From: Eutreptiella sp. 'Long Island Sound 2002'
Taxonomy: Eukaryota; Protista; Euglenida
DNA length: 64,000 nucleotides
Assembly: GCA_964036045.1 (NCBI GenBank)
Contig: OZ038378.1
Span: forward strand, 104,656,001 to 104,720,000
Direction: 5' to 3'
The notes beneath the pieces were generated by a model. It was not told the origin of the DNA and did not search any database. It saw only the letters and a program-made list of their open reading frames with translations. This document shows, one piece after another, positions 3,030-48,779 of this stretch. Every line of letters begins with the position of its first letter. Within the stretch, counting starts at the first letter, position 1. The position numbers and the translations under genes were made by a program.

Positions 3030-4617
3030 CTTAAGAGAAAAAAAAGCCCGGGAGTGGACCAGCTGGTGGCGGAGGCATACGAGCACCCAGAGGCACCAGA
3101 GCTGGATGGTCTGGCGGACAGGGTCACGAATGTGTAGCAGACAGGCAATCCCCAAGCGGAGTCGGGGGGCAAGGTGCGGCCCGTGTATAAGAAAGAGGAT
3201 CAACTCAGGCCAGGGAACTGGAGGCCCATATGCTGTTCTGTCACGGAGGCCAGTCTGGTGTGGATGGTGATCTTCGGGAGGATACAGCGGCGGCTGTATG
3301 CGGCGGCAGTCATACTGGACAGCATGTGGGGGTCCGTGCCGGGCAGGTCCATACAGGAGGCAAGCTTCCTGTACGACATGTACATCGATGATGAGGACCT
3401 GGAGGCATTCATGGCGTCCGCAGACGTGAAGGAGGCGTTGCCAAACACGCCGCACAGGATCATAGAGGAGGTATGGCGGCAGCTGGGGCTCCCGTACAGT
3501 GACTTCGTAGGGAAGTACCTGCGCTCAAGAAAGTACACAGTCGCCACAGGTAAGGGCTGTACGGAGTGGGTAACCCCAGGTAGCGGTGTGCCACAGGGCG
3601 TGGTGGAGGGCCCATTCCTGTACATGATGGCCATGCTCCCCCTGATGAGTTGGATAGCGCGGGAGTATCCACAACTGGCGAGGGCACCACACACGGCACC
3701 AGCGCAGGCGTATGTGGATGATGCGGTTCCCATGGCCCGGGATGAAAAGGCTCAACAGGTGGTGCAGGACCTGATGCAGACGCATGGGAGGGATAACCAC
3801 CTGGTCTGGAGCCCAGAGAAGTCGGCGGTTCTGAGGAGGGGTGGCGAAGGTGGTATGGCGCTGGAAGTGGGGGACGGGTTGGCGTGGCTGGAGAGGGCAA
3901 AGGAAGCGGTGGTTCTTGGACATGTACAGGCCATGGAGGCGGGCCCCGTCAAGCTGCAAGAAAAAATGCTCAGGGCGTTCAGGGCGATGCTGGTGGTCCT
4001 CCGGAATCACCCCCCGTCAGTACAGACGACCCTGTACTACCTACGAGCACTGCTCAATGCAGGGATAGAGTACGAGGAAATGCACCTCCTGCACTGGAGG
4101 GGGCAGTTGGAGGAGGTAGAGGGGGAGGTGGGGGGGCTCATCAGGGGATATGAGGGGATACCCCCGGAGGTACCATGGTGGGTGTTGCGGACGCCGACTG
4201 CCTACTATGGGGGGGGGATGCCCACGGCGGGGGAGGCGTACAGGGCACATACGGCGAGAACGCTGAGCACGATGTGCCACAATCAGGAGGAGGTGGTGCA
4301 ACGGGTGTGCTATCACGCGGTCACGGAGGTGCAGAAGGAGGAGAACATGTGCCCGCGCTATGTGGGGCACAGGCGAAGGCGGCTGGCTGCAGGGAAGAAG
4401 GAGCGCATGTGGCGTGTCCTACAGGCGGTGTCGGCGGGGGAGGAGCACATGTTGGCGAGCAACAGGACGTGCGACAGGCGTGGACCGGTCCTGGTGCTGG
4501 ACGTGGAGTTCGGGGGGCCGCCGAATGTCAGGAAGGAAGGAGTACGTTTGGAGGTGCTGCACGTGCGCAAGATTGATATGAAGGAGTACAGAAAAGCAGG
4601 ACTGCACCACGCGGAGT
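3030..4617 (+). pseudogene. Non-LTR reverse transcriptase domain and thumb/linker
   Basis: KKSPGVDQL, PGNWRPICC, ASADVKEALPNTPH, GSGVPQGVVEGPFLY and QAYVDDAV (YxDD) in ORFs 2730-3137 and 3174-4688. Confidence 0.95.
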
Positions 4618-5109
4618 TGAGAAGGTTTTATAGTGATTTTAACACTGTGTGTTTGTTGTGCCTCTCCTGCTGCTTGCTGCTGCTGTAGGGTTACCTGCTG
4701 CTTGTTAATTGATGAAAAAAAGGTTTATTTTTGCTGCAATACAACCAATCCAGGATACCCCAAGCCAGAGAGAGGCAAGTGGAGGAGAATCTGGATCAGA
4801 GCATGAAGGGCTGCAGTCACAAACAGTTAGATAAAGAAAACCATCAACAATAGACCACAGCAATTAGCATACATTGCAACTCAGGATGAAATATTTTACA
4901 TGATTGAGAAAAGCTGATTGGAAAACTGCCCCAAGGGCTCACTCTCATCCTCAGTGCCATTTTGAGATGTACACTCCTTGTTTTTGGGTCCCAAAGCGCT
5001 GAGGTGGCATGGCATGTGGCGATGAGGTCACTGCCATGTCACATGGGATATTCCTACTTAGCTAGGCTGACCAGGAATTGAACCCAGGACCTCTCAAAAA
5101 GATGTTCCA

Positions 5110-6359
5110 GCCCTGTCTGTGAAATCAAGCAGGTTCACCACGATCTTGGAGGTGGCAATAGCCTTAGCCTCCTGAGACCTGCGTCCCCCAGGGCGTCGGG
5201 TCTTCTTCTTCTTCTTCTTCATCTTCCCACTTGGGTTCTCGGGGTCCTCCGGGTCGTCGTCCTCCGAGGGCGAGGAGAAGTCATCGACGGTGGTTCATCA
5301 TCGGAGGGATTCCCGCCTAGGTCACTGGAGCTGTAGGGCTCCACATCCACCATTGCCCTAAGGACTGTCAGCCCGGGCCAGTCCAGCTCGGCTCTCGTAG
5401 AATTCCCCACGTTTGGCTGGGCCGTCCTCGGCACGAAAGGGCTTCTAGGTATCACAGCAGGGGTTGGCATCGGTCGGCTCCTCAAGGCTCCCCAGGGTGT
5501 TCGTCAGCCCTGCCTCCAGGTGGTTGGCCTGTACTCGATGGGGTGACATTCCCACCGTGGTAGGTGACGCTCGGGGCGGTATCAGGGACTCCATTTTCTC
5601 TCGAATCTCTTGAGTGAGGTCACCAACATATTTAGACATGGCTCCTCGGAGCACCTCGTTGATCTCCGACCGCGTCAGGGACCTGTTGGAGGATCTTTCC
5701 GATCCTCTACTCCTGCTCCCGCATGACTCAGGTCCTCTCCCCAACCCACTCAAGGTTGCATACCCAGGAACATCCACATAGGCTCCCGTAGCGGGTAGGG
5801 GATGGTGATAGTCAGTCGCATACCATCGCGGAGCAGAACTGGAGGTCACCGGCTCACTGGTTGTAGTTGCTTCTTGAAACGCAGTGGTAGGTGGGTTCAC
5901 ACCATAGGCAGGGTAGGTAGGCATACCAGTAAAGCCTGTGCCCTCAGCCATAGGCGGGTTGGTTATGGGTGTGGATGTTGCAGCGGCTGGGTCTGAAGTT
6001 GGGAGTGTGGTGGTTATAGGAGAGGATGATGCGTGGAGGCCAGAAGCGCTTGGTGCGCCTTCGAAGGTAGGATCATTCGTCGGGTCGTGCCCTTCGTCTG
6101 CTACTTCTTCTGCTATGCTTTCTCCGGCATCCTTCTCGCTCTCTCTCTTTCTCTTCACATGATGTGTGTCCACCTCCTCGACTGAGAGGGCCCGGAAGGC
6201 CGACTGAAGTCCTTCCATCGAATCCTCTGCAACGTCCACTGGCCCATGTAAGGGCTCCGAAGGTACAGCGCTAGGTCCAGGTCCAGGTTCACCAGGTGCT
6301 GGCATTGCTGGTGCCTCAGGCGCCCTCTTCACGTCGGTGTCCTCTTTCTTGGTGTCCAT
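5110..6359 (-). pseudogene. gag-like N-terminal fragment, frameshifted and truncated at the 3' LTR
   Basis: 304-aa low-complexity ORF starts ~100 bp after the PBS and continues across frameshifts to ...SQEAKAIATSKIVVNLLDFTD, where it joins the downstream repeat. The gag call is positional. Confidence 0.5.
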
Positions 6360-6454
6360 ACTCGTTCGCCCTTCTTGCTTATATATGACTCATCGCGGCG
6401 CACTGGATGTACGGCACGGGGTTGCTGCCCGTACGCAGAGACAGTCTGCCCCTT

Positions 6455-6462
6455 GCTACCAG
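6455..6462 (-). promoter_or_regulatory. Primer-binding-site-like motif (TGGTAGCA, initiator tRNA-Met type)
   Basis: Lies immediately 3' of the upstream LTR on the minus strand; complementary to the ...UGCUACCA end of eukaryotic initiator tRNA-Met. Confidence 0.6.
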
Positions 6463-6902
6463 AAGGTATTATAGTGATTTCAACACTGTGTGTTTGTTGT
6501 GCCTCTCCTGCTGCTTGCTGCTGGTGTGGGGTTTCCTGCTGCTTGTCTTTGATGAGGAAAATATTTAATTTGCTGAAATACAACCAATCCAGGATAACCA
6601 AAGCCAGAGATAAGCAAGTAGAAGAGAATCAGGATCAAAGCATAAAGGGCTGCAGTCACAAAGAGTTAGATAAAAAAAACAATCAACAATAGACTACAGC
6701 AATTAGCATACATTGCAACTCAGGATGAAATATTTTACATGATTGAGAAGACCTGATTGGAAAACTGCCCCAAGGGCTCACTCTCATCCTCAGTGCCATT
6801 TTGAGATGTACACTCTTTGTTTTTGGGTCCCATAGCGCTGAGGTGGCATGGCATGTGGCGATGAGGTCACTGCCATGTCACATGGGATAATCCTACTTAG
6901 CT

Positions 6903-6980
6903 AGGCTGACCGGGAATTGAACCCAGGACCTCTCAAAAAGAGGTGCCCCAGCCCCCTAGGGTGCATACCACTAGGATAGC
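6903..6980 (-). pseudogene. tRNA-Pro-like segment (A and B boxes) inside the LTR; 3' half repeated at 5063-5094
   Basis: The minus strand reads CTAGTGGTATG...GAGAGGTCCTGGGTTCAATTCCCGGTCAGCCT, resembling eukaryotic tRNA-Pro (CTAGTGGTATG...GAGAGGTCCCGGGTTCAAATCCCGGACGAGCCC). The anticodon arm is altered. Confidence 0.6.
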
Positions 6981-8249
6981 TAAGAATTCATGAGAAAACA
7001 TAGATAAATTAATAGGCTCTGCCCTGGATATGTCAGTTCTCAGTCAACTCTGGAAAGTATGAATAGCCTCACATTAATAGGGGATTAAGGGGTCCACTCC
7101 ATATCCTGATTTAGTGTTTGGTTCCATAAGTCAAAATGGGCTGTCACCCATTTTGGTTAGGCCAATACTAAGATAAAAATGCTAGAGTGCTTAATGCATC
7201 TCTAATACAACTAGAGTATGCCTCAAGGCATTGGAAAAGCACTTTTTCTTACTGGCTCTATCGGGACTCCAGAGTCGAGGAATGGGGCGTATGCATGTGG
7301 ATGATGAGGAGAGCGCGGGCACAAGAAGACCGCGGTAGGTGGGACAGGCGGATGCAGAAGATGTGGAACGAGCGGGTGGCGCAGTGGGGGATCATGAGGA
7401 AGAAAACAAGGCGCGCGAGGGGAGCAAAGGCAATACAAGAGAAGGTGGTGCTGGACAGGGGAGAAAGGAACAAGGCCAGACCGGACATACTGTTGTGTGC
7501 GCTGCTGAGACTCAAAGGGCCGGGGAGAAAGGTGTAAAGTAAGAGCCGATAGTGGTACGATGTCCATGCGGATATGTTTCGGAGAGACAACATCCTGGAG
7601 GGGGCAGGACAGGGGGACCAGTGTTGGAGATGCACCAAGGAGGCGTGGCAGGTACCGTGGCTGGTCCTGAGAATGACGGCATAGGCATTCCGGACCGCGA
7701 CAATGCGCAATACGGACGCCAGGGGACGGTGGTGGGGGCCAGTATTGCGGCTGCCCAGGGAGGTGCAGGAGGATGAGGAGGCCCAAGAGGGCGCGGAGGT
7801 CTTGTGGGGGGAGGAACAGGAGGGGAAAAGAGCAGGAGTCCTGGTAGAATGGGACACAGTGCAGGGACCGCAGGAGAAGGATGGTGGAATGGCGCTGAGG
7901 TTCCGGATGACGGACACGAATAGGCCCAAAGAAGAGGCGCCCATAGTGCCCGTGGGCCACAAGTTTGGGGAAAGTGCGAGGAGGATCAAACTGACGGTCC
8001 ACGGGTTGCCAGTGGACAGAGTATGGTACCTGGTTCCTGTGCAAACATACCTGGAGCAGGGCAGGGCAAAGGCAGACAGGGCATGGTGTGGTGGCTGGAA
8101 GGCCAGGACGGACAATAAGTGGGCAGTGTACAGGGGGGTGAGAGAACTGAGCGTCGAGGATGGCGTACGAGAGTATGGCATAGGAAGGCACAGGGTGTAC
8201 TGCCACTACCCCAGGGAAGTGGTGCGCATACCGGAGCCCACAGAGGAGA

Positions 8250-9100: not shown

Positions 9101-11187
9101 AACAGTATATGTGGGTTTTGGAGCCGCTGGTTAGGAATCAGGACATCCCGCTGCTCAACTAGGGTGAGAAAGGCGGACGAGCGATGGAGAGGGAGGTCAG
9201 GGAAGAAGGGCATCGCAAGGGGCTGTGGCCATGGTGATCGTGAAATCAGTATGGCGGGGACTCGAGCCACTGACCGAACTCCGGCGCTGAGCAGGCCCTA
9301 GGGGAGCGGACCGGGGCAAGACAGCAAGTTGATGGCCCAGCAGGCCCACGAGCGCGTGGCGGATGACGCAAGGCAAGAAGAAGGGGCAGCCAAGAGGAAC
9401 CAAGAGGCGCAAGCGGACACGAAAAAAAGAAGCAAGGGGTGCGAGGACAAGGAAGAAACCGTCCAGTACGTGACCAGCGGCCGCCTGGGAAGTGTCCACA
9501 GTACGCAGAGGCATGGAAGACGACCAGGAGCAGCGGTACGCCGGGAGCACAGCACACAAAGGGCGCGCAAACAGTGGCACAGAGGAGACCGCCAGGTGCG
9601 GGGCGCGGGTAGAAGAGGGACGAGACGACACGGCCAGGGCTCGAACAAGATGCCATGTGTGCAGAAAGATGTCCCGCAAGCCTAAGCTGAAGTCAAGCCA
9701 GTCGCCGGCAGCGGAGGAGGCGCCGCCACTGCAGGCCGTGAGGAGATAAGGGGGGCAGGGGCTGGTGGGAGTGAGGGTTGACGTGGCCGGAATGCAGTCG
9801 GCCCCAGCCCCGCAGCCCCTCTCGCCGACGTCCTTGGCGGCATCCGCACAGGTGTCATCATCCTCGTCTCCGGAGAGTCCGGACACGGTCCAGCAGGAGG
9901 GGCGGCGAACAGAAGAGCAGAAGAGGAGAGACTAGGCCGCGGTAGAGACAGGGTAGGGAGAAGAAAGGGGGGGGCAAGCAGAGACAAGTCGGGGGGGGAC
10001 CGAGGTGGTAGCAGCGGGAGCTGAAGGGCAGGGGGAGGAGCGGGAGGAGCAAGCGGTAGCGAGGCGGCGGGCGGACCTGTACAACCTGGCAGAGAGCAAC
10101 ATGCTCGACGACATCCTTGTGGTGTCGGAGGACGAGGGGGAGGAGGAGAGGAGGAGGGCAGTGGAGAGGGGCCCAGGGCAGCCGGCGGCACCCAATGTGC
10201 CGGCTGCTGCCATGAGGTCCATCCTCCCAGAGCTGCAGAAGAATGAGGAGGGCAAGAGTAGGCGAGGACGGGCGGAGGCCGGAGCAGCAGAGAGCGGGCA
10301 CAGCAGGGTACGCACCGGAGGACAGGGGCAGACAGGCAAGGCAGGGAAAGGGCAGGCGGGGGCGTCAGGGGCCAGGCATGTGACAGAGCCCCTGGGGGGG
10401 AAAGGGGGAAAAGGGGGCGCACAGGGTCGACAGTGGCCGCAGCCTTAACGCTCGTTCAAACAGCCGCCGCCTGCGTCACCCCCACAGGTCAGTGCGGCGG
10501 TGCGGGCAGAGGAGGAGAGGGAGGCACGCTGCCAGCAGGCGTGGTACGAGGCGCTGGCGCACATGGAGCGCCAGCGCCGTGACCACCAACCCCCGGAGCC
10601 GGGGTCAGACACCATCTACCGGCTGGAGATAGTGTCAGGGAGGCGGGGGTCGAAGCGCCAGGGTGGACAGGAGGGGTAGGGAGGGGTGCACAGCGGACAA
10701 CCCAGTGGCGGGCTGGAGAGAGGGGAAGAGCAGGCAGGATAGAGCAGAGCAGGAGCGGCGGGGCGCCGGGGCCAGCGGGAGGGAGGGCAAGAGAGTGGGA
10801 GCCAGCGAAGTGGACAGGCACGGAGCGCGGTGCAGGGCAGTGATGCGGGGCTAGAAGAAGGCGTTAAGAGCTGGCATAGTGGGCACGGTGCGCAAGGGAA
10901 GGGAGCGGGACAAGAGGGGCTCCAGGGAAAGGGACACGGCAAGGCGAGACCCCAAGGAGCAGGCAGCAAGGGGCACGGGAAAGCGGGGCAAACGGGCAAA
11001 GGGCAGGGGAAGGCGGGTGGCCGTGGGTACATGGGCTCACCAGGGTTCCCAGGGTAGGTATTGGTTTGGTGGGGAGGTATAGTCCGGTCAGCCATCCCGC
11101 CAGTCATCCCACAATATTTGCCACCAGCTTACCCTGCGATGGGGATGATGTACCCACCCCCACCAGCGTACCCGGGCTGAAAAAAAA

Positions 11188-12460
11188 CCATTTTTTGGCC
11201 TAAAACAGTGTTTCTGGGGCCTGAGTGGTCAGTTGTAGGGCTCCCCACCCTATTTTGAGGCTGCTGGACTCCATAAAAAGGTGTTTTGCAAGTTTTTGGA
11301 GCAGTTTATTGAGTTTTTTGGAGCCGCCATCACCAAACAACCGCATTTTTTTGCCCCAAAATGGCCAAAAAAAGACATTTTTTTGCCCAAAACAGTGTTT
11401 TTGGGGCGTGAGTGGTCAGTTGTAGGGCCCCACACCCTATTTTCAGGGTGCTGGACTCAAGACACAAGTGTTTTGCAAGGTTTTGGAGCAAGTAACCGAG
11501 TTTTTCGGAGCCGCCATCACCAAAAACCGCATTTTTGGCCCAAAAAAACCAAAAAAAGGCCATTTTTTGGCCTAAAACAGTGTGTTTGGGGCCTGAGTGG
11601 TCAGTTGTAGGGCTCCCCACCCTATTTTGAGGGTGCTGGACTCAAGTAAAAGTGTTTTGCAAGGTTTTGAAGCAAGTTATCGATCGTTTTCGAGCCGCCA
11701 TCACCAAAAAACCGCATTTTTTGCCCCGAAATGGCCAAAACAGTTTTTTGCCCAAAACAGTGTTTTTGGGGCCTGAATGGGCAGTTGTGGGGCCCTCCAC
11801 CTTATTTTGAGGGTGCTGGAGTGAAATAAACGTGTTTTGCAATTTTTTGGAGCAGGTTATCGAGTGTTTCGGAGACGCCATCACCAAAAAAAAACGCATT
11901 TTTTGCCCAAAAATGGCCAAAAAATGCCTTTTTTTGCCCTGAAACAGCGTTTTTGGGGCCTGAGTGGTCAGTTGTAGGGCCTCATACCCTATTTGCAGGG
12001 TGCTGGACTCGGGGAAAAACGTTTTGCAAGGTTTTGGAGCAGATAATCAAGGGTTTCAGGGCCGCCGACACCAAAAAAACGCATTTTTTGGTCAAAAATG
12101 GCCAAAAAAAGCCAATTTTTGGCCTAAAACAGTGTTTCTGGGGCCTGAGTGGTCACAGGTAGGGCCCCATACCCTATTTTGAGGATGCTGGAGTCTCAAA
12201 AGCGCGTTTTGCAGTGTTTTGGAGCAAATGATCAAGGGTTTCGGAGCCACCATCACCAAAAAACCGCTTTTTTTGCCCAAAAAAAGCGATTTTTTTGGCC
12301 TAAAACAGCATTTTGGGGGCATGAGTGTTCAGTTGTAGGGCCCCATACCCTATTTTGAGTGTGGTGGACTCAGGAAAACTTGTTTTGCAAGGTTTTGGAG
12401 CAAGTTATAGTGTTTTTGTAGCGGCCATCACCAAAAAACCGTATTTCTTGCCAAAAACAA
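11188..12460. repeat. Tandem satellite, ~185-bp unit, about 7 copies, rich in A/T tracts
   Basis: Anchor GAGTGGTCAGTTGTAGG or a variant at 11223, 11410, 11595, 11775, 11962, 12147 and 12322. Confidence 0.95.
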
Positions 12461-12469
12461 ACATGTATG

Positions 12470-19830: not shown

Positions 19831-20034
19831 CCTGTCAGCGCTGCCGTCCCAGAGTGACCCATGCAGTTTTAGTACATATGTCTTATGAGGCCTGGTGTCT
19901 GGAGAAACATCCTTGGGAATTTTCACTTGATTTTGCCACTTGTGTGGCTCACGCCCTTCCGGAACGCTCTTCTTGGTTAAATTTGGGTTTTTTTTGAGTT
20001 CAGATCGATCAGTAATTGGCTAAGAAGGTCCTAG

Positions 20035-22206
20035 TGACGCGAAATCGTGGGCTGTCCACGATTGCGCAAGAACAGGCCACTTAATGGGTGTTTCCTGGGA
20101 TGGATGAATGTACCTTAGGTACTCCGTAGACCTTTTGGAGCCTGCGGACAGGCAGCGCGAACGCTGCCGCGAAGCGCCAGATTGTCGCAGGCGATAATTG
20201 CCAGCTCACGCTCAGGCATGAAAGACCACCAAAAGGCAGTGATTTTACAATAAATTTTTATTGCAGATCATTAATTTTAATTACGACGGGTTCATCCAAG
20301 GGTGTAGCATAAGTTACGGGCATGCGTGGGATCTGTGCTTCACAGAGACCAAACACTCTGCCCTTTTCTGTGCACAGGACACCAGACTGTGTCATGTATG
20401 GGACCATGCAAGGGTCCTACGATGATTTAAGCCAAGCTATGGACATGGAGAACCCTGTGGGAACGACGGACGCCGAAGTGATTTCAGTGCTCCTCGTGTG
20501 TCGCTCCGTGCCTAGAAGGATGACCAAGAGTGGGGCTGGTGCGCTACTGGAGGCGCTTGCACGTCCGGAGAAAAGAGGCTTTTCCGAGTTTGACAAATCT
20601 CAAGAGATTTTGCGAAAAATCAGGGATTTCGACAAAAACTTTGCAGGAACTTCAAGGGCCGTAGCAACGGAACTAGTGAAGCGAAGCAAAGCGTCAAACT
20701 ACAGAATCCTCACGATATCCGTACAATAAGGAGCCAAAAGCTGGGCACCCCACTACCGCTTCAAAATCATCGTACCGTGCAGCAGGTCCCATGTAGCGTG
20801 ACGTGAGTGGCACTGCGGCAGAGACGCCCAGCGATCCGCAGTGCAACGCCCGAGGACAAAAACTGCGCTCGGCTGTATGGAGGTGCGTTGCTGCGCCGGC
20901 TTGCGTAGCACCCCTCCGCCCCATGGGTCCGCACGACACCAGACCCAGCCGTCGCTCGTGAAGATCGTCAGCGATTCCCCCCGTGTGACGCAGCTGTTCT
21001 GCTCTCACTGTAGTAATGCTGACCTCGGAAGCACCATGGGAGCCCTCGCTGCAGACCAAGGCAGCTTGCAGCATCGTGGCAAAAGAGACCCTCGCTGTAC
21101 AACGTCGAGTACAGCATCGTGGCAGATCCCGTGCGCTTGGACGCGCCAAGCGCATTGAGGCATGGTGTGCGAAGGGGTTTGGTACGTAAATACCAGTCAG
21201 GGAGCGCCGCTGACGCTCTTCAGTGGCCAGTCCAGTGAGACCAGCGTGGGACCCCAGCGCGCTGTGTCGTTTTTATTTTCTGGGCCGGCATTAATTTTAT
21301 TATTAATCTGCCATGTCTCTGGTGGTGGCAATCAGTGGTTCAGCGTTCTTGTTGGGCAGCCACCCTTTTACTGCTGGCGCGCAGAGGCGTCAGCGCGTGT
21401 AAGCTATGCACAGGAAACACCCACGCGTGGGGCTTGCAGAGCTGCCATCAGCCTAGCAAGCCTTTTAAGGAGAGGGGTGACGCGAAATCGTGGGCTGTCC
21501 ACGATTGCGCAAGAACAGGCCACTTAATGGGTGTTTCCTGGGATGGATGAATGTACCTTAGGTACTCCGTAGACCTTTTGGAGCCTGCGGACAGGCAGCG
21601 CGAACGCTGCCGCGAAGCGCCAGATTGTCGCAGGCGATAATTGCCAGCTCACGCTCAGGCATGAAAGACCACCAAAAGGCAGTGATTTTACAATAAATTT
21701 TTATTGCAGATCATTAATTTTAATTACGACGGGTTCATCCAAGGGTGTAGCATAAGTTACGGGCATGCGTGGGATCTGTGCTTCACAGAGACCAAACACT
21801 CTGCCCTTTTCTGTGCACAGGACACCAGACTGTGTCATGTATGGGACCATGCAAGGGTCCTACGATGATTTAAGCCAAGCTATGGACATGGAGAACCCTG
21901 TGGGAACGACGGACGCCGAAGTGATTTCAGTGCTCCTCGTGTGTCGCTCCGTGCCTAGAAGGATGACCAAGAGTGGGGCTGGTGCGCTACTGGAGGCGCT
22001 TGCACGTCCGGAGAAAAGAGGTCTTTCCGAGTTTGACAAATCTCATAAGATTTTGCGAAAAATCAGGGATTTCGACAAAAACTTTGCAGGAACTTCAAGG
22101 GCCGTAGCAACGGAACTAGTGAAGCGAAGCAAAGCGTCAAACTACAGAATCCTCACGATATCCGTACAATAAGGAGCCAAAAGCTGGGCACCCCACTACC
22201 GCTTCA
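20035..22206 (+). mobile_element. Young non-autonomous LTR element (TRIM/LARD-like): LTRs 20035-20763 and 21478-22206, 714-bp non-coding interior
   Basis: Two 729-bp LTRs with TG...CA ends and about four substitutions noticed; 4-bp TSD CTAG (20031-20034, 22207-22210); polypurine tract AAGGAGAGGGG just before the 3' LTR. Confidence 0.95.
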
Positions 22207-22229
22207 CTAGCGTCCCGGTGTATGCCTCA

Positions 22230-24430: not shown

Positions 24431-27099
24431 TGTGCACAGCACCGACCGCGTTGTTGTTGTGGGCTGGGTTGTGTGGTTCGTGGTTGTTTTTGGATGCCGT
24501 GTGGTGCTGGTGTCGTGCTGTGTGGTGCATTGTCGGGCTGTGTTCTTGGTTTCGTCGCTGACGATCTTCCGTGAGCGGTGTCTCACCCTGTTTTGTTGGT
24601 GCCCTGCGGTGCCCTGTTGTGCCGTGCTGTTTTTTGCAGTGATTTGACGTGTGTGGTGCTGTTGCGCGTTTTTGTGTGGTGTGTTGTGCTGTCTGCTGTT
24701 CTGGTGCGCGGTGTCGTCCAGTTGTCAAACCGCTGCGCGTTTTTTCTGCCCTGCCCCCCGCCCCCGCCGCCTGGTCCCCTGTCGTGGCCTCTTGCTTGGG
24801 TTCTGTCCTGGGGGGGTGCTGTGTTGTTCTGTTGTGCCGCCTGCCGTGTGGTGTGCTGCTGTTTGCGTTGTTTCTTCCTGGTGCTGCCCTGTTGCTTCGT
24901 TTGCGTTGGCTGGTGCCGTCTGTTGTTGCGTGTGGTTACTGGGTGTTCGTTGCTTGGTCTGGTTGCCCGCTGTTGTTTCCCTTCTGGCGTGCTTTGTTGC
25001 AGCTGCTCCTGCCTGGCTTCATGGCTTGCTGCCCTGCTGTGTGCAGTGGTTCCTTGTGGCGTCCCGCTCCCCTGTGCTGTGTCCACACAATGGCGCAGCA
25101 GGCCACGCGGCCAGACAGGGACACTGGCGACAACACGCTCAACGAGAGTACCACAGCAGGCAGCGGACACGAACGAAAACAGCCCAGACCAACACAGAAA
25201 GGCAGGGAAAAGCGCGAAGCAACACCAGGCACGGATCAGCGACCAACTGACAGCGGGACACAGAACAAGCCAACAAAACGCAGGCGCGCGGGGACAGCAC
25301 ACTACAGCCCCGCACAAGACGCGCCACCGAACACAACACAGGGAGAAACAGTGCAACACACCGTGAGCGGTGCCACAGGGCACAACAGCGCCACACCCGA
25401 AGACGCCGCGCCAGAGCAAGACACAGGGCAGCGATCAACAGAAACACCACAATAAAACGAACGACCCAACACAGCACAGGGAGGGACACCACAGCACGAG
25501 ACACCACAACAGGGAACCGCCCAGGACCACCACAGACCGGCGCCCCACAAGGCACAACTTCCGGCGACAGGACCAGACATCACCACAGCACAACAGGACG
25601 CAGCCCAGCAACGCAACAGATAGCGACGCAGCACAGCACCGCACCTAACACCACAGCACACAGGGACAGCACAGGATAAAAAAATCAAACAGCGCAGCAA
25701 GCACCAACGCAGGACAGCGAGCAACGAGACAACACAACGAACCACCGCACGACACAAGTACGCCAGCACGGCACAGCGCGGCAGCACACACACCCCACAG
25801 CAGACAACACCACAAGCGCAAGGTGGGCACAACAAGAAACAGAAAATAACAAAACAAACGGGGCGCCCGGGAACGCCACAAACAGACACAGCGCAGGCGA
25901 GGGGAGGGGGGGCAGCACCACACCCACAAGGCGCACCACAACAAAGGAATACCCGCCACCAAAAGGAACAACACGGCAGAAAGCACCGCAGGGCAAGCAA
26001 GCAGAGCAGGAAACGGGCGCGGGGCGGCAGCCGCCCCCGAAAAAAAAAGGCAGCGGCAACGACAAATGGGGGAAACCACAAAAAGCCAAAAAAAACAAAA
26101 GGAGAGAAAAACAAAAAACTGCGGCGGGGGGGGAGGGGGAGGGGGGGAAACAGGGGCAAGAAGCCAAAGATCCAGGAGGAAGAAGGAAAAGAGAAAAAGA
26201 GGAAACACAACGGAAAGCAGGAAAAAAAACCAAAAGCGGGGGGGGGGGGGACAACAAGAGGCTAAAGGCAAAAGACAGAGAGAGAGACAATGACAACGGC
26301 TAAATGGTAACCCGAATCAAAGAACGAAACAAGGCAACATACAGAAACAGGGCCACCCAAGCGCGGAGGCCGCCGAGGAAACAAAGCAAGCAGAAAGAAC
26401 GGCCACAGAAAAGGTGAGGCGCACCAAAACGCACCCAGGAGGGCAGCCCGCCCGACCCGGCGAAGAGCAACGAGCACACGCACACACGCACGGGACCTAG
26501 GAGTGGCGTCCTCCGACCCGCAAGGGGAGGTGTCCGCGCCACAGAAAACAGCCCCGTTGCACCGGCCTAGTCCCCCGTCGAACGACAGACGGTATGGGAA
26601 ACCGACGGTCTGAGTGACCGGGTCCAAAGAGGCATACCTCTGCAGCGCACGTAGGAAAAGACCGACGGCGGAGGCACCCACCGCGGAATACCCCATCGCG
26701 GGGCCGCGAACGGGTAGGACCCGGAGCTAGTCCAGCGCCCCCGCCTCGGCAGAGTCCAGGGGCAGGCACAATGAGCCCGGTTGTCGGCCAACATCCACGC
26801 TCCACGCAGCCGTCCAGTAAATCTCGGGGCCGAAGCACCTAGGTTGGTAAAGTGCACAACAGCGTCAGAAAAGCCGACTGGAGCACCGGAAGCGAGCGGA
26901 CCGAGGCAGGGCGCACCGCGCCAAGCCACGAGGCACGCAAGAGAGGCACGCCGCCGGCCACGACCAAGGCACACGGACAGGTGCCAAGCAACAACGGCCC
27001 CCGGGTGCAGCATACCCGGGAAGCGCACAAAACACGCAAAGAACCACCGCACGGGAGCAGGTGCCAGGTAACACCGAACCTGCACACCACAAACCCGAC

Positions 27100-28685
27100 C
27101 CAGGATTTGCAGCGTTCAGCTGGAGGGACCACAAATAGAAACGCACGCCAACATCCCAGCCAGGAATGGCGGGGCGCTCCCGAAACCCGCACCAGAGCAA
27201 AAAAACCCACACTGCACACCCAAGCCAGGACTGGCGTGGTGCAGGCGAAGCAAAAACACAAACACACACGCCCCAACACCGCAGCCAGGAGTGGCCGGGT
27301 GGAAGCCAAAAACCAAACCTACACACACGCACCACAAACCCCAGCAAGGATTGGCGGGGTACAAGCGGAGCGCGCACGGAAACACACACACCTGAACACC
27401 CCAGCCAGGAATGGTCGGGCGCAGCCACAACCTGAACCCGAGCACACATGCCCACACCGCACGACCGAGCCAGGAATGTTGGGGTACAAGCGGGGCACGC
27501 AGACACAGCCCAACACCCCAGCCAAGAATGGTGGGGTACAGGTGCAGCGAGCACAAAACACACCCGTCCCAAAACCTGGGCTAGGAATGGCGGGGCGCAC
27601 CGGAAACCGGCACCCAAGCACACACAGCCACCCCGCACACCCCAGTGAGGACTGGCGAGGTGCAGGCAGAGAGCGCACACAAAGAAACACGCCTCAACAC
27701 CCCAGCCAGGATCGGCGGGGTGATAGCCAAAACGAGAACCCACAGACACGCACCACGAACCCCAGCCAGAAATGGCGGCGTACAGGCGGTGAACGCATAC
27801 AGACACACACGGCCGAACATGCCAGCCAAGAATGGCGGGGCTCAGCCGAAACACGAACCCAAGCACACGCACCCACACCGCACACTCGAGCCAGGAATTG
27901 CGGGCAACACGTGGAGCGTGCACAGGAAAACACACACCCCAACAGGCCAGGCAGAAATGGCGGTGTACAGGCCGAGCGAGCACAAAAACACATGAACCCA
28001 ACACCTCAGCCAGGAAAGGCGGGGCGCAGCCGACACCCGCACCGAAGCACACATATTCACACCGCACACCCGAGCCAGGACTCGCCAGCTGCAGGCAGAG
28101 CGCACACACAATCACACATGCCCGAGCACCCTAGCCAGGATTGGCGGGGTGCAAGCAGGAACCCGAACCCACACGCACGCACCACGAACCCCAGCCAGGA
28201 TTGGCGAGGTACACGCAGAGTGCACACGGAAAAACCCCCTGGCCAACAACCCAGCCAGGAATGGCGGGACGCAGCCAGAAACTTGAACTGTAGCACACAC
28301 ACCCACACCGCACACCCCGGCCCTGATTGGCAGAGTGAAAGACAAAACCCGTACCCGGACAAACGCACCACGAACCCCAGGAAGGCCTTGTCGCGTACAG
28401 TTGGGGGGCCCACACAAAGACACACACCCCAAAGCTCTCGCCAGGAATGGCCGGGCGCAGCTGAAACCCGAGCCCAAGCACACACACCCACACCGCACAT
28501 CCCAACCAGGACTGGCAGGGTACAAGAAGAAATCGCACAGAAAGACCCACACCCCAGCCAGGAATGGCGGGGTGAAGCCGAAATGCAAACCCACACCACA
28601 CACCCCATCTACGAATCGCTGGGTGCAGCCGAAACCCGTGCTCAAACACACGCACCACAAGCCCCAGGCAGGATTGGCGGGGTTA
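27100..28685. repeat. CA-rich satellite, ~60-bp subunit with core CCAGCCAGGAATGGCGGGG; second copy ~36050-37650
   Basis: The core recurs about every 60 bp (e.g. ~27159, 27222, 27283, 27343, 27403). Confidence 0.88.
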
Positions 28686-29203
28686 TTGCGAAACCCAGAC
28701 CCAAACACAAGCGCTACAAGACAGTAGGAAAACCAGTGTCCATGTCCCGGGCACTGAGGCAGCCCGTGCTATGCAGGTGGACCGTCTGAACATTACCGGG
28801 AGACAGGGGGTAAGGCTGCATCCTGAGGCCTGCGCTACCTTGGGGCTCGAGGCGGAGCATGCGACACCCAAGCACCTTGGAAGCAAAGTACCAAGAGCAC
28901 GCCGCTGGTATGCCTTGGGAACGGGATAGGCCAGGAGGTCCGGAGAACTCCTAGGGTACCGCTCAAAGGAGGAAACGTGCACAGGCCCGGGGGCACACCC
29001 TCCCGGCCAGACAAGTGCGTCACACCAGTGGCAATTAGCGGTCCCCGTGCTGTCCAGGGCCGCTTTGTTGGGGCGACCAGTCAGGTCTAGCGGGATGTAA
29101 GTCGCCTCACCTCTGTAACCGCGGAGCCTCTTTATGTTCCTCCTAGGGCGACGCCAAGGTATGGGGCGCCCCTGCACGACAAAGTGCACCTACCTACCTA
29201 CCT
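28686..29203 (+). mobile_element. LINE/SINE-like 3' module ending in (CTAC)n; second copy ~37650-38154
   Basis: A ~520-bp unique module terminates in CCTACCTACCTACCT (29189-29203; 38140-38154). Confidence 0.55.
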
Positions 29204-29205
29204 CA

Positions 29206-31140
29206 GGCATCGTTGGTGAGCCCCTACCCCTCCCGTTTCAAGATGCAGTATGGCAGGAGGATAGCTCAGTTGCTTTGGCATTGCGGTGTTGGAATAATCT
29301 TCAATCAGTGTCGGAGATTCTCACTTCAAGTGCATGCATGCTTCCACCGGTCATGGCTAGGCCGAATTTGTTCTCAACATGCAAGGTCCCAGGATTGGCA
29401 TTTGATAAGGCTTTCCGTCTTCGGCCATGAATCGGTTAAGTCCTCCTGCCTGGGCACGGATTGGTGGGGGTCTTTCTCTAAGGGCCAGGACTGGGGCGGG
29501 ACCATCTCCCTCAAGGCCTGGATTGGGGCAGGGCCATCTCTCTTAGAGGCGGGACTATCACTCTTTGGGATTGGACAGTCTCATCATCGATGTGCTGTCA
29601 TTGGACTCAGGATATCTCTCCATTCCTACTCACTCTGCGGGCCAGATCTAGGACGCTTCATGTGACCCGGGGCATCTTTTTACCACGTTTCTCTCTGAGT
29701 AGCATTGGATTAGTCAGGTGTCAGACGAACAAGCAGATATGCGATATTGACTTCACATGTCCATGTGTGGATTGGTTCGAATGCACATGACCATTGTGAT
29801 TCTCTATGCCTTCGGTTCTTTAAGACAGGGACCAGCTGACGGGGCTGAGTGGCATGTCCACGCATGTGAGGGCATGAGGTATATGTTGTGTGTTGGCTTT
29901 GTAATTTCCTTGTGCCTTTCGTTCGTGACACACTGTGGTGATCGCAGCAAGTGGTATGTAGCACAAACTAAATATGTGAGGTTACGGGGCTGGCCCTTAT
30001 TGCTGCTTTGTTCGCGAGCACCAAGTGAACCCGCCAAGTGTATTCAGTGCCTGGCCATTGTGTATTATGTTGCTGAGTGATGGGCTCGTATGGTCCGGTG
30101 TGAAGTACCAAGGCCCTGCTAGCATGATGAAATATGTAATGTGTCAAAAATGCCAGGTGTCCGATATTGTCTTGAGGTCTCTGCCGCGACTCATATTTAA
30201 TGATCCTCATTGCAAGCTCTTTACATGTGATCATCCGTGATTCATGATTGGCAACAGGTCAAGTATTTGGTCATGCCGTACTTTGTATTCATGGAGGACG
30301 TGGTGTTATGCTTGATCCACGGTGGGAAGGTCTCTCATCTTTCTCAATTCCAGTTTGTGCCGTCTTGTAGGCAAGAGTGAGGATGAGCCATATGGGGCCA
30401 CGCTTATGTTCAATCTGATGATGTCCTTCTGAGGGGGAAAAGGTTTTTCCTCCTTTGCCATGTACCATAGGGAGTTCTTTGATGTGAATGATCCCATGAG
30501 TCAATATCATTTTCCGAATGTCTTGAGTCGCGGTTGTGCTCGCATGGCGTCAGGCTTCTGTATAGGAACACATAGTTCACATGTGCATAGTACATAAAAT
30601 TGATTCTTGGAATAGGAATGCAACATCGGCTTACATACTCGCATATCTTGTATCGGGACATCACTTCCACTTCTGTTTCTTCCTCTCCTCTTGCCCAACA
30701 TTGACATTATTTGGTCCCTCTCCGTGATTATGTCTATCCATTGATGTGGGTACGCCCAACCAAATTTGGCCATCAATTATTGGGATTTCATTGGTCGAGT
30801 TCATTGCATTTCATTGATCAAGTGTTCGGAATTTATTGAAAGGGTTCCCAAGAGGTGTGCTTGCGGGATAATTTCGAATTTTGTGAAACATAGAAGCACT
30901 GAGAAGGTCACGGATGATGGGAGTCACGGGGAAGAGAGTGGAGAAACCGGTTATAGGCAGTAGAAATCGCACAATGGCAGGTGCAGGTCCTATAGATTCT
31001 CTTCAAGACGAGCACGTAGGGTAAGTGCTTCAGGATGTGTGTCCGTGCCGCACAATGTCTGACAATATGCAGGAAAAAACACACCACCCAAACCTGCAGG
31101 CTGTCCAACACCCTGTTCCAGACTTTCGGGTTGTGCAACG
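29206..31140. other. Unidentified non-repetitive, coding-like degenerate segment; second copy ~38155-40080
   Basis: Lower GC than its neighbours; several 60-90-aa ORF pieces are shared by both copies; no family recognised. Confidence 0.4.
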
Positions 31141-31560
31141 CGTGATGTGACCAGCCAAGATTGAGGGACTCTGTTGGCTACCAGAGCTCAGGGCCTTGCG
31201 AGAAGGATAGAGCAGGGCCATCGCGCCCTACCACCTCACCAGGAACGCGCAGCCAGAGCAGCAAAGCCCGGGGCCTTGGACAACAACTTGTTAATAAATG
31301 CCGGCCAACAGCAAGAGCGCCACAAAGAACCCATGCCCGAGACAACCGTGATGGATACGCACAGGATCACAATGCACCGCAAACTGCCGCCTATCCGCTG
31401 CAGGAACACCTCGGTCAATTGCATGAAGCTTGGGCAGCAGTCCTGACATGGCAGCTAAGCGTCCGTGCTGCCCATCGATGCTACAGTGTCGCAGAACGGA
31501 CGATACGAAATACATTTTCTTCGGTTCATGTGCGGACGACCCATTCAACTTGATTCATCC
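31140..31560 (+). pseudogene. 5' fragment of the pogo-like element (paralog of 18850-19160)
   Basis: cagcaaagccc...aacaacttgttaataaatgccggccaacagcaag matches 18868-18935. Confidence 0.75.
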
Positions 31561-31569
31561 AATCGCCCG

Positions 31570-32260
31570 GGTCCAATCTTTGGGGGCTGCGGCCGGGGCC
31601 CGCTACCCACTGGCTGTGGTTGTGGAGAGTGTGGGTGTGGGGACCCGTCACCAACCCCACGGCGCGCGCTCTTGCGAGCTGGCTTTGCGCGCTGTGGGGG
31701 CGGCACAATGACGCTCCAGGGGGGGGGGGGGCTGCCTGGGTGTGGGGCGTCCGGGCTTCGGCGCTCTCGCTTACCCAACCGCCCGTCCTCGGGCCGTGCG
31801 GCTGGGTCCCGCTACCCACTGGCTGCGGGTTTGGGGAGTGTGGGGGTGGGGACCCGTCACCAACCCCACAGCGGGCGCTCTTGCGAGCTGGGCTTGCGCG
31901 CTGTGGGGGCGGCACGGCGGCGCCCGAGGGGGGGCGTTTCTTGCCTGAATGTGAAGCGTCCAGGGTTGGGCGCTCACCCACGCCCGACAGCCCGTCCTTC
32001 TGACGAGCGGCCGGGGCCTGATACCCAATGGCTGCTGGTGTGGGGGCTATGGGCGTGAGGACCCGTCACCAACCCCGCAGCGCGCGCTCCTGCGAGCTTG
32101 CTTTGCCCGCTGCGAGGGCAGCACGAGGGCACCCAGGGGGGGGGCGTCTCTTACCTTGGTGTGGGGCGTCTGTGGTTGGGCGGTCTCTCACGGCTGACCG
32201 CCCGTCGTTGGGTCGTGTGGCTGGGGCCCCCTACCGACTGGCTGTTAATGTCGGGGCCTG
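31570..32260. repeat. ~209-bp GC-rich satellite (about 3.5 copies), same family as 43600-45490
   Basis: Recurring ggggcccgctacccactggctg...gacccgtcaccaacccca...gcgcgctcttgcgagctgg. Confidence 0.85.
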
Positions 32261-32830
32261 TGCCGCGGTTCGTCTTGATTTGTGCGCGCTTCCCGAGTTG
32301 GCGGCACCCGGTGCCATTGTTGCTTGGCACCTGTCCTTGTGCCATGGCTGTTGCCGGCTGCGTGCCTCTCTGGCCTGCCTCGTGGCCCCGCGTTGGTGCA
32401 CCGCGCCTCGTCTGGTCCGGTCGCTCTCGATGCTTCGGTTGGCTTTCCCTTTGCCGTGGTGCCTTCCCCCATCCCGGGGGCTGTCGCCCCGGGCTTTACT
32501 GGGCGGCTGCGCAGGGCACGTGGAGGCCCGCCGAGAACCGGGCTCTTTGTGCCTGCCGCTGGCCCCTGCCGAGGCAGGGGCGCTTGGCTCGCTCCGCGTT
32601 GTATCCGTTCAGGGTTCTGTGATGGGGTCGTCCTTGGAGGTTCCCTCCAGTCTCAGTGTTGGGCTGCGTGCGCTGTGGTTGTTGGTCCTGTGTGGACCCG
32701 GTCACTGACGCGTCCGGTTTCCCGTACCGTTCCTCTTTCCGACGGGGGACTCCGCCAGTGCACCGGAGCTGTTTAGTTTGGACGCCAACGCATCCACTTA
32801 CGGGTCGGAGGACACCACGCCCGGGTCCCG
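32260..32830 (+). repeat. Conserved ~570-bp module 'M' (also ~45495-46075 +, ~26440-27060 -, ~35430-36010 -)
   Basis: Shared ...gtggacccggtcactgacgcgtccggtttccc...tacgggtcggaggac(a/g)ccac in four copies, two per orientation. Confidence 0.85.
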
Positions 32831-33469
32831 TGCGTGTGTGCTTGTAGGTGCTCTTCTTGGCTGGTTCCGGCAGGCTGGCCTCCCGGGCGCGTTTCGGTGC
32901 GCCTCACCTTTCCTTCGGCCGTTTTGTCCTTCTTCTTTGTTCGGCCACCTCCGGGCTGGGGTTGCCCCTTTCCTGTCCTTTTGTTCGCCTTCCTGTCGTT
33001 TCCCCTCCTTCCTTCTTTTCCCCTCTCGCGCCCCAGCTTCCTCCAGCTTTTTGTGCAACCTGCCCCTGGGTGCCGTGGTCCTTGGCGCTCTTCGCTTGCT
33101 CCGCCCCCCCCCCCACCCCCCCCCCTTTTTTTTCCCTGTTTTTTGTTCGGACGCCCCCTTGTATCGGGTTTTCCGTTGTTTCCGGCCCTGGGTGCCCTGG
33201 GCCTTTGCGCTTTGTGGCTGCCCGCCCCCCTCCTTCTGTCTCTCTATTTCTTTGTTTGGGGGTGTTTTTTTCTGTCGCGTTCCCGCTTTTTCCTGGTTAC
33301 CGCCGCTCTTCGCTTCTGCTCCGCCTGCCTAGGTTTCTTTCTCCTCCTCCGTGTGCGGCCTTGCAAGTGGTGCGTGCGCTGTGTGCTTGGGCTGTCCCCC
33401 CCCCCCCTCCGGTGGCTGCTCGTGTCCTGCTGTGTCTCATGTTTTGCTGTGTGGTGCCGTGGACTGTTG

Positions 33470-36400
33470 ATGGCTGGTTTGTGTGGTTCGTGGTTGTTTT
33501 TGGATGCCGTGTGGTGCATTGTCCTGCTGTGTTCTTGGTTTCGTCGCTGGCAATCTCCCGTGAGCGTTGTCTCTGCCTGTTTTGTTGGTGTCGTGCGGTG
33601 TCCTGTGCGGTGATTTGTTGTGTGTGATGCCGTCGCGCGTTTTTGTGTAGTGTGTTGTGCTGTCTGCTGTCCTGGTGCGCGGTGTCGTCCAGTTGTCAAA
33701 CCGCTGCGCGGTCTTTCTGCCCTGCCCCCCGCTCCTGTCGCCTGGTCCCCTGTCGTGGCCTGTTGTTTGTGTTCTGTCCTGGGGGGGTGCTGTGTTGTTC
33801 TGTTGTGCCACCTGCCGTGTGGTGGGCTGCTGTTTGCGTCCTTTCTTCGTGGTGCTGCCCTGTACCTTCGTTCGCGCTGTCTGGTGCTGTGTGTTATTGC
33901 GTGTGGTTACTGGGTGTTCGTTGCCTGGTCTGGTTGCCCGCTGTTGTTTCCCTTCTGGCATGTCTTGTCGCAGGTGCTCCTGCCTGGCTGCGTGGCTTGC
34001 CGCCCTGCTGTGTGCAGTGGTTCCTTGTGGCGTCCCGCTCCCCTGTGCTGTGTCCACACAACGGCGCAGCAGGCCACGCGGCCAGACAGGGACACCGGCG
34101 ACAACACACTCCACCAGAGCACCACAGCAGGCAGCAGACACGAACGGAAACAGCCCAGACGAACCCGGAAAGACAGGGGAAAACGGGAGGCAACACCAGG
34201 CACGGATCAGCGACCAAATGACAGGGAGACACAGAACAAACCGACACAACGCAGGCGCGCGGGGACAGCACACCACAGCACCGCACAAGACGCGCCACCA
34301 AACACAACAAAGGGAGAAACAGTGCAACACACCGTAAGCAGCGCCAGGGTACACAACAGCGCCACACCCGAAGACGCCGCGCCAGAGCAAGACACAGGGC
34401 AGCGAACAACAGAAACACCACAATAACACGAACGACCCAACACAGCACAGGGAGGGACACCACAGCATGAGACACCACAACACGGAACCGCCCAGGACCA
34501 CCACAGACCGGCACCCCACAAGGCACAACTTCACGCGACAACACCAGACATCACAACAGCACAACAGGACGCAGCCGGGCAACGCAATGGATAGCAACGC
34601 AGCACATCACCGCACCTAACACCACAGCACACAGGGACAGCACAGTAAGCACCAACACAGGACAGCGAGCAACGAGACCACACAACGAACCACCGCACGA
34701 CACAAGTACGCCAGCACGGCACAGCACGGCAGCACACACACCACACGGCGGACAACACCACAAGCGGATGCAGCGCACGACAAGAAACAGGAACTAACAA
34801 GAGAAACGGGGCGGCCGGGAGTGAACACACCACAAACAGACACGGCGCCGGCCAGGGGGGGGGGCAGCACCACCACCACAAGGCGCACCACACCAAGGGA
34901 ATACCCACAACCAAAAGGAACAACACGGCACACAGCACCGCAGGGCAAGCAGGCAGAGCAGGAAACGGGCGCGGGGCGGTAGGCCCCCCCCCAAAAAAAA
35001 GCATGCGCCAACAACAAGAGAGGGAAACAACAAAAAGCCAAAAAAAAACAAAAAGAGAGAAAAACAAGAAACTGCAGTGGGGGCAGAAGGGGGGAGGATA
35101 AAACAGGGGCAAGAAGCCAGGGAGCCAGGAGGAAGAAGGAAAAAAGAAAAAGAGGAAACACAAGGGAAGGCAGGAGAAAAAAAACCAAAGACGGGGGGGG
35201 GCAACAGGAGGCCAAAGGCAAAAGACAGAGAGAGAGGAAATGACAATGGCCAAATGGAAACCCGAAACAAAAAACGAAACGAGGCAACATACAGAAACAA
35301 GGCAACCCAAGCCTGGAGGCTGCCGAGGAAACAAAGCAAGCACAGAGAACGGCCACAGAAAAGGTGAGGCGCACCAAAACGCGACCAGGAGGGCAGCCCG
35401 CCGGACCCGGCCAAGAAGAACGAGCACACGCACACACGCATGGGACCCAGGAGTGGCGTCCTCCGACCCGCAAGGGGAGGTGTCGGCGCCACACAAAAAA
35501 GCCCCGGTGCACCGGCCTAGTCCCCCGTCCAACAACAGACGGTATGGGAAACCGGGAGTCTGAGTGACCAGGTCCACACAGGCATACCACTGCAGCGCAG
35601 GTAGCAAAAGACCGACGGCGGAGGGACCCGCTATGGAAAACCCCGTCGCGGGGCCGCGAACGGGTAGGACCCGGAGCGAGTTCAGCGCCCCCGCCTCGGC
35701 GGAGTCCAGGGGCAGCCACAATGAGCTCGGTTGTCGGCCAAACTCCTCGCTCCGCGCAGCCGTCCAGTAAATCTGGGGGCGGAAGCACCTGGCTTGGAGA
35801 AGGCACAACGGTGTCAGGAAAGCCGACTGGAGCACCGGAAGCGACCGGACCGAGGCAAGGCTCTCCGCGCCAAGCCACGAGGCACGCCAGAGAGGCACGC
35901 CGCCGGCCACGACCAAGGCACACAGACATGTTTCAAGCAACAACGGCCCGCGGGTGCAGCATACCCGGGAAGCGCACAAAACACACAAAGAACCACCGCA
36001 CGGGAGCAGGTGCCAGGGAACACCCAACTTGCACACCACAAACCCCACCCAGGATTTGCGGCGTCCAGCTGGAGGGACCACAAAGAGAAACACACGCCAA
36101 CATCCCAGCCAGGAATGGCGGGGCGCGGCCGAAACCCGCACCCAGGCAATAACACCCACACTGCACACCCGAGCCAGGACTGGCGGGGTGCAGGCGGAGC
36201 GAGAAGACAAACACACACGCCCCAACACCGCAGCCAGAAGTGGCGGGTGAAAGCCAAAACCCGAACGTACACACACGCACCACAAACCCCAGCAGGGATT
36301 AGCGGGGTACAAGCGGAGCGCGCACACAAACACACACACCTGAACACCCCAGCCAGGAATGGCGGGGCGCAGCCAAAACCCGAACCCGAGCACAAATGCC

Positions 36401-47820: not shown

Positions 47821-48174
47821 TCCCCCTACCTTTGAAAACCTTCTGAGAACCAAAAATTAAGCTGTTTCTCACTAAAAAATTAGGCAATACGCAACTCACG
47901 CACCAAAGCTGGCAGCAATACTGGAATTACATTTCTGACCTACCTGTTGCCACGCGGCCTCGGAGATGGTGGTCTTGGTTGCAGGAGGTTGACCGCTTTT
48001 CCCTCAGGGCCGGTTGCCTAAGCTGACGAAAAGGGGTGAGGGGGGTCACGAGGGAGGGGAGGTAGGTGCATGGGGAAGGAAAGAAGAGGAAAGGAAGCAG
48101 GGCGAAGGGACGCGGCGTCTGAGAACCATTTTCTGAGTTTTACGCGCTGCTCTCGACGGGCTCTTCTACATACA

Positions 48175-48770: not shown

Positions 48771-48779
48771 CGAGGGACA

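Follow-up and report, generated by a model that had tools for sequence, protein, structure and literature searches.

Positions 20035-22206 of a 64,000-nucleotide stretch of the genome of Eutreptiella sp. 'Long Island Sound 2002' (contig OZ038378.1, positions 104,656,001 to 104,720,000 of the forward strand) are occupied by a non-autonomous long terminal repeat (LTR) retrotransposon of 2172 bp with 729-bp LTRs. The whole stretch is called the window in what follows, and its contig is called C1, so that the window is C1:104656001-104720000. The element probably primes its reverse transcription with the 5' end of its own RNA, in the manner of the fission-yeast element Tf1. The 11 nt at the position of its primer-binding site (PBS) are the exact reverse complement of 11 nt inside its own LTR, and in related families such complementarity has been kept by compensatory changes at a homologous LTR site. 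This covariation is the main evidence for self-priming and, as we read the alignments, decides in its favor.

The PBS, AAATCATCGTA, lies at 20764-20774, directly after the 5' LTR, and does not begin with TGG. It pairs with TACGATGATTT at 20418-20428 in 11 of 11 positions, and the pairing stops at each edge, where C is opposite C and A is opposite A. The random expectation of such an 11-nt match at offset 0 is 719/4^11, or about 1.7e-4. An empirical null agrees with this small value: among 8563 other internal 11-mers from seven elements, a perfect complement in the element's own LTR was found at 2 loci.

Covariation of the predicted primer and the primer-binding site

Two of the families compared here, represented by loci L069 and L070, were chosen by their LTR ends or by the junction between polypurine tract (PPT) and LTR alone, blind to the sequence that follows the LTR. 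The junction ACCGCTTCA followed by AAAT, with a next base other than C, has 111 matches in the genome, which belong mostly to one family carrying AAATAAATCTG after the LTR. In L069, a single copy, AAATAAATCTG is the PBS, and its perfect complement CAGATTTATTT is found 540 nt before the end of the LTR. The junction between PPT and LTR start, AGGGG(0-2 nt)+TGA(A/C)GC(A/G)(A/G)AATC has 355 matches, distributed over several families. In L070, one unit of the TGACGCAGAATC family, the LTR ends with GCTTCA and is followed by the PBS AAATTTTTGTA, which pairs with the LTR site TACAAGAATTT by ten Watson-Crick pairs and one G-U pair. A third related family, L065A, has the complementary pair AAATAATTCTG and CAGAATTATTT. 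The related families have a PPT of the AGGAGGGG type.

Consider now the four families together, i.e., the family of the window and its three relatives. Their LTR primer sites align in the same columns, directly 3' of a conserved CAA(A/G)G..C motif, which reads GCAAGGGTCC in the present element and aligns with GCAAGGCCCG, GCAAAGCTCG, and TCAAAGGTTC in the others; this motif is a possible context for a core promoter or an initiator. Compared two by two, in six combinations, the four families differ in between one and five base pairs on both sides, and in none on one side only. The sequences are different from family to family, and in all four the complementarity ends sharply at 11-12 nt. Matches at offset 0 are also seen in unrelated families, with 11 nt in L066, 12 nt in L067, and 9 nt in L065B. 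Seven families have seven different PBS sequences, each complemented by its own LTR. In contrast, an abundant LTR element of the same genome has an ordinary PBS of the TGG type, TGGTAGCAAGAGGCAG, and from this follows that the self-complement signature is not a general property of the DNA of this genome.

Within the family of the window, the two 11-mers hardly vary. The PBS is unchanged in 30 of 30 fetched loci, and the LTR 11-mer is unchanged in both LTRs of every locus but one. Among 27 copies, the PPT AAGGAGAGGGG is invariant, and no variant common to more than one copy falls in LTR positions 331-420 or in the PBS bin, yet the overall variation is too sparse for the invariance of the 11-mers to reach significance on 11 sites. 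In the exceptional locus (L029, C12:7327645-7332840), both LTRs have G in place of T as the last base of the 11-mer, and the PBS is unaltered. Such a pattern is expected of a cycle in which the parental 3' LTR serves as the template for the LTR and the primer as the template for the PBS. The resulting mismatch at the 3' terminus of the primer should disable that copy.

The first-pass annotation of this DNA had proposed self-priming from the single element and had suggested a search for compensatory changes among genomic copies. The proposal is now backed by such changes at a homologous LTR site in four related families. The search among copies of the family itself turned out otherwise, in that single-copy variants of the PBS or the LTR 11-mer lack compensation; we read them as decay after insertion, partly at CpG, and as uninformative on function.

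Anatomy and recent activity of the family

The features of the element, all on the plus strand and in window coordinates, are the following.

20031..20034, +: left copy of the target-site duplication, CTAG (read from the sequence)
20035..20763, +: 5' LTR, 729 bp, TG..CA (sequence and repeat search)
20035..20417 and 20418..20763, +: predicted U3 and predicted R-U5, with the U3/R boundary drawn where the primer site begins
20408..20417, +: GCAAGGGTCC, a conserved motif that immediately precedes the primer site
20418..20428, +: predicted self-primer TACGATGATTT, LTR positions 384-394, exact reverse complement of 20764-20774
20764..20774, +: AAATCATCGTA, a PBS of the self-priming type that lacks TGG and follows U5 at offset 0
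20764..21477, +: internal region of 714 nt, non-coding, without a Pfam family and without an open reading frame (ORF) open across copies
20785..20792, +: GGTCCCAT, able to pair with ATGGGACC at 20398-20405 in a duplex collinear with that of primer and PBS
21411..21423, +: 5' half of a stem of 13 nt around the PPT/U3 junction, with its partner at 21528-21540
21467..21477, +: PPT AAGGAGAGGGG, abutting the 3' LTR
21478..22206, +: 3' LTR, 729 bp, TG..CA, which has the 11-mer a second time, at 21861-21871
22207..22210, +: right copy of the target-site duplication, CTAG (read from the sequence)

The two LTRs are 99.45% identical, and their four differing positions are dinucleotide changes at LTR positions 545-546 and 569-570. 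In the genome, the family has at least 42 full-length copies with 93-100% identity, and a 22-mer that spans the LTR 11-mer has 166 exact matches, which mark LTR cores. Perfect 4-bp target duplications, each of a different sequence, flank 23 of 26 copies, and the number of differences between the two LTRs of a copy ranges from 0 to 12 with a median of 3 (26 copies). Intact duplications together with low LTR divergence mean that the family was moved by an integrase until very recently.

A Pfam search of the ORFs of the element gave no match, and these ORFs are open in just 6-15 of 27 copies. The internal 714 nt have no similarity to the pol and gag loci with which they were compared, including a tblastx comparison with the pol loci. 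The lack of a Pfam match and of a conserved ORF makes the element non-autonomous, and that we are dealing with a recently active non-autonomous LTR retrotransposon is close to certain. In these respects the first-pass annotation was right throughout: its LTRs, CTAG duplication, PPT, and 11-nt complement are all in place, the complement is limited to 11 nt on both sides, its chance estimate of about 2e-4 is near the recomputed value, and its description of the element as young, recently active, and non-coding agrees with the copies in the genome.

Tandem arrays of the form LTR-internal-LTR-internal-LTR, with three to five units sharing single LTRs, are frequent in the family and its relatives. 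Examples from the family are C1:135523127-135526779, C3:122240788-122243748, C4:143494747-143497724, and C7:85.78-86.27 Mb, and examples from related families are C7:18899967-18905433 and C8:68198924-68204073.

The predicted cycle and its alternatives

To see how self-priming would work here, suppose that transcription starts at 20418 or within one base of it. Nucleotides 1-11 of the RNA, UACGAUGAUUU, would then fold back onto 20764-20774, just 3' of U5, and the RNase H of a helper reverse transcriptase would cut after nucleotide 11. The 3' end freed in this way would be extended through U5 and R, after which strand transfers, plus-strand priming at the PPT, and integration with a 4-bp stagger would complete the cycle. 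Gag, protease, reverse transcriptase/RNase H, and integrase would be supplied in trans by a putative autonomous element of the Ty3 type.

Since the base that directly follows U5 is the partner of the 3' end of the LTR 11-mer, extension of this end would copy U5 and R. Self-priming implies, further, that progeny elements have a PBS recopied from the primer, which means that the complementarity should end exactly where the primer has its 5' end. The sharp limit at 11-12 nt in four families supports a start at 20418, plus or minus 1, and this is the position that we somewhat favor. When the RNA from 20418 to 40 nt past the PBS is folded, all 11 primer-PBS pairs are present in the minimum-free-energy structure with a mean pair probability of 0.96, and the helix resumes after a 2-nt bulge, where AAGC pairs with GCUU of U5. 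The primer-PBS duplex is contained in the predicted folds of L065A, L065B, and L069, and for the most part in that of L067.

Several points weigh against this account. The whole case for the mechanism consists of sequence geometry and covariation, and three of the comparison families had been picked because they showed the signature. The minimum-free-energy fold of L066 lacks the primer-PBS duplex. There is also the 8-nt duplex between 20398-20405 and 20785-20792, the LTR arm of which would be in U3 if the start were at 20418, and which might hint at a start further upstream. The screen for tRNA genes covered the window and 54 loci, which formally leaves room for an 11-nt match to a tRNA fragment. 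Finally, genome searches with the LTR core, the LTR ends, and the PPT junction found no autonomous element that shares the LTR, the LTR ends, or the PBS.

A first rival reading is that the complementarity is functional but does not serve priming by the RNA's own 5' end. Transcription could start upstream and the primer be excised internally, the 11-mer of the 3' LTR could pair with the PBS, or the pairing could serve circularization, packaging, or strand transfer. We regard this as unlikely, with the following considerations in mind. The 5' end of the RNA is a prediction from sequence, the additional duplex, which is collinear with that of primer and PBS and separated from it by an internal loop of 12 x 10 nt, has its LTR arm upstream of the predicted start, and the genomic RNA contains two copies of the 11-mer only on condition that R starts no later than the 11-mer. 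However, the 8-nt duplex is absent from the related families compared. The primer-PBS pairing is, moreover, always at offset 0 after U5, and no other geometry would allow extension of the 11-mer from its 3' end into U5; its length of 11-12 nt is as in Tf1; and a longer primer would yield a longer PBS, in conflict with the sharp 5' limit in four families.

If instead a host tRNA, a tRNA fragment, or another small RNA primed at 20764, the match to the LTR would be incidental. Halves of tRNA-Met and tRNA-Ile are known as primers in Ty1/copia lineages (PMC6317226), and the screen in which ARAGORN found no tRNA gene was, as said, confined to the window and 54 loci. Against such a primer stand the lack of TGG in the PBS and the behavior of the 16-mer made up of the PBS and the next 5 nt, the reverse complement of which has 84 exact matches in the genome, every one at a PBS site of a family member, while matches with one mismatch are at the level of the control. 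Seven coincidences would be required, since seven families have seven different PBS sequences that each match their own LTR, and we hold a host primer to be very improbable. A chance match in a decayed element without a working PBS is effectively refuted: a single 11-mer match does have a non-zero probability of about 2e-4, but the LTRs are identical or nearly so and the duplications intact, as expected after recent transposition, the 11-mer and the PBS are constant in all but one of 30 fetched loci, and the signature recurs in relatives with compensatory changes.

At the other end of the internal region, the 13-nt stem encloses the PPT and the first 50 nt of U3. A stem of this length was reached by 0 of 300 shuffles, and the same LTR arm occurs also at 20085-20097. 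Stems at the same place have 11 nt in L067 (1/300 shuffles) and 10 nt in L065A (5/300); L065B and L066 show it weakly, and L070 lacks it. It may be a cis-element for plus-strand priming.

Candidate helpers, known counterparts, and genomic setting

The first-pass annotation had named a chromodomain-bearing Ty3 lineage in the window as a candidate mobilizer. This suggestion found no support: what the window contains are degenerate Ty3 pol remnants at 50481-52258, 55726-56729, and 61316-61792 (50.5-61.8 kb), in which no chromodomain was detected and which have no similarity to the element. It had also proposed to look for autonomous Ty3 elements with the same LTR ends, and the genome search returned none, all end-sharing elements being small. 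Where the 166 LTR cores form pairs, these are 1.44-1.48 kb apart; the other cores are solo, interrupted, or members of tandem arrays, which leaves no autonomous version of the family among them. In the relatives that share the LTR ends, the internal region measures about 0.15-0.7 kb throughout. The one pair with a spacing of 11.7 kb (C2:102886073 to 102897798) turned out to be an L065A-type element with an unrelated, tRNA-primed LTR element nested in it.

The genome has about 27,000 integrase candidates. Among the elements inspected is a chromovirus-like element of 14.5 kb on C9 (L064 and L068; C9:22013000-22027499, minus strand), in which a 1411-aa ORF is followed by an in-frame stop, a 1588-aa pol with reverse transcriptase, RNase H, integrase, chromodomain, and Tf2-type SH3, and a 528-aa ORF without a Pfam match; neither an LTR pair nor a PBS was found within these 14.5 kb. 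In a Ty3 family on C21 (L058 and L072; C21:31.05-31.22 Mb), with ORFs of 1434-1998 aa, a G-run is followed by a 195-nt segment, present roughly once in each unit, and then by a 10-nt complement; 10-nt matches are expected by chance in 1.8 kb. The units of this family, with the 1998-aa ORF, follow one another head to tail and repeat about every 15.9 kb. Just after the long G-run, at 690 nt upstream of the ORF, is a 22-mer found roughly once in each unit; it has 40 matches in the genome, usually about 10.4 kb downstream of an integrase. A helper that matches the studied element would be expected to have an intact gag-pol, the ends TGAAGCGG...CCGCTTCA, a PBS starting with AAAT, and a AGGAGGGG tract.

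In Tf1 of Schizosaccharomyces pombe, the first 11 nt of the element's own mRNA pair at the PBS and RNase H cuts between nucleotides 11 and 12 (PMC7175516); Tj1 of S. japonicus is read likewise as self-primed (PMC4600332). The present element is like Tf1, Tf2, and Tj1 in having an 11-nt complement of its own LTR at the PBS position in place of a PBS of the tRNA type. It shares with Tf1 and Tf2 also the occurrence of tandem elements with a common LTR, which in those elements arise through integrase-independent single-strand annealing (PMC11042837). It differs from Tf1 and Tj1, which are autonomous and experimentally proven cases, in that it is non-coding, has a predicted start and a predicted cleavage, makes a 4-bp duplication, and resides in a euglenid host. 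Although its priming appears Tf1-like, membership of the Tf1/sushi clade is decided by pol, and an element without pol cannot be assigned to it.

Predictions of self-priming exist for the Tf1/sushi group (fungi and vertebrates), the Tcn1 clade (mosses and club-mosses), and the TAR lineage of Ty1/copia; in one survey of plant elements they applied to 12% (PMC6317226). For the plant and vertebrate lineages the argument is of the same type as here, from complementarity between PBS and LTR. Those lineages are, however, autonomous and classed by pol phylogeny, whereas the present case concerns elements of Euglenozoa without pol, in which compensatory change is seen across non-autonomous families. 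Experimental proof of self-primed reverse transcription is reportedly confined to fission-yeast elements.

The element can also be set beside the helper-dependent classes, i.e., terminal-repeat retrotransposons in miniature (TRIM, such as Cassandra), large retrotransposon derivatives (LARD), and Dasheng-type deletion derivatives. Like these, it has LTRs, PBS, PPT, and target duplications, lacks coding capacity, depends on a helper, and is prone to form tandems (PMC6934838, PMC11042837). With 2172 bp and 729-bp LTRs it is larger than TRIM elements (<1 kb, with LTRs of 100-250 bp), and it lacks the long internal region of LARD elements, so that its size fits neither class. The described TRIM and LARD members have, in addition, mostly PBSs of the tRNA type, and unlike in these helper-dependent classes no autonomous master with the same LTR was found in this genome.

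The mechanism of self-priming as such is already known. What is most likely new is its occurrence in a euglenid and in helper-dependent elements; no report of self-priming in Euglena was found in the literature searched. The present analysis adds relatives that were chosen without regard to the signature, compensatory changes at a homologous site, a census of the family, and the contrast with a tRNA-primed element. Compensatory maintenance in several euglenid families would extend self-priming to a distant branch of eukaryotes. It would also mean that elements without genes can use self-priming with borrowed enzymes, in which case a host tRNA is unnecessary and a helper would be suitable whenever its RNase H accepts the fold-back duplex. 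Annotation pipelines for LTR elements that expect a tRNA-type PBS may leave many Euglena elements unclassified. The account makes one sharp prediction that can be tested by experiment, namely an RNA 5' end at 20418.

One may go further and ask whether self-priming holds throughout a euglenid group of LTR elements that depend on helpers and have no same-LTR master. We put this forward tentatively, and rather doubt it than trust it at present. The common traits of the proposed group would be LTR ends TGA(A/C)GC...GCTTCA, the motif that precedes the primer site, and a PPT of the AGGAGGGG type. A second conserved RNA stem, the one around the PPT/U3 junction, could then be a new cis-element of the group. 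If self-priming is general in it, the helper RNase H would recognize the geometry of the fold-back duplex and not its sequence, and priming of the Tf1 type would exist in Discoba, far from fungi, animals, and plants, either by ancient origin or by horizontal transfer.

That the genome is euglenid follows from its spliced leader and the linkage of this leader to 5S rRNA genes. A 24-mer of the Euglena gracilis spliced leader, used as a lead only, has 5458 matches in the genome, with 0 for the reversed control, and these are dispersed along the chromosomes and not collected in one array. At three loci (L031-L033; C1:27992-31015, 111846-114869, and 143016-146039) the leader is followed by a GT donor and has a 5S rRNA gene about 510 nt away, in units of more than 3 kb that are 99% identical; this proximity is presumably the linked arrangement of spliced-leader RNA and 5S genes described for Euglena. 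The published E. gracilis assembly has 2.37 Gb, with 22-33% LTR elements (PMC11252322).

The abundant element with the tRNA-type PBS TGGTAGCAAGAGGCAG is represented in the window by a part at 4620-7253 (minus strand), and is found also at L071:227-1341. It has an LTR of about 780 nt that starts with TGAGTAAGAAATAG and contains a motif resembling a tRNA T-arm, and a 304-aa ORF (5445-6359, minus strand). Two copies of the studied family, L018 and L028, are inserted into copies of this element. On the plus strand at 3174-4688, the window has a 504-aa ORF with an RVT_1 reverse-transcriptase domain (E 7e-15), which probably belongs to another class of retroelement, since it has no tblastn similarity to the chromovirus pols compared. 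The window also has a direct duplication of about 6.8 kb at 24516-40262, with a spacing of 8.99 kb and 90% identity, which includes shorter repeats of roughly 190-430 nt. Tandem repeats with a unit of 65 nt lie at 48108-48825, and at 11138-12468 a repeat recurs about every 185 nt.

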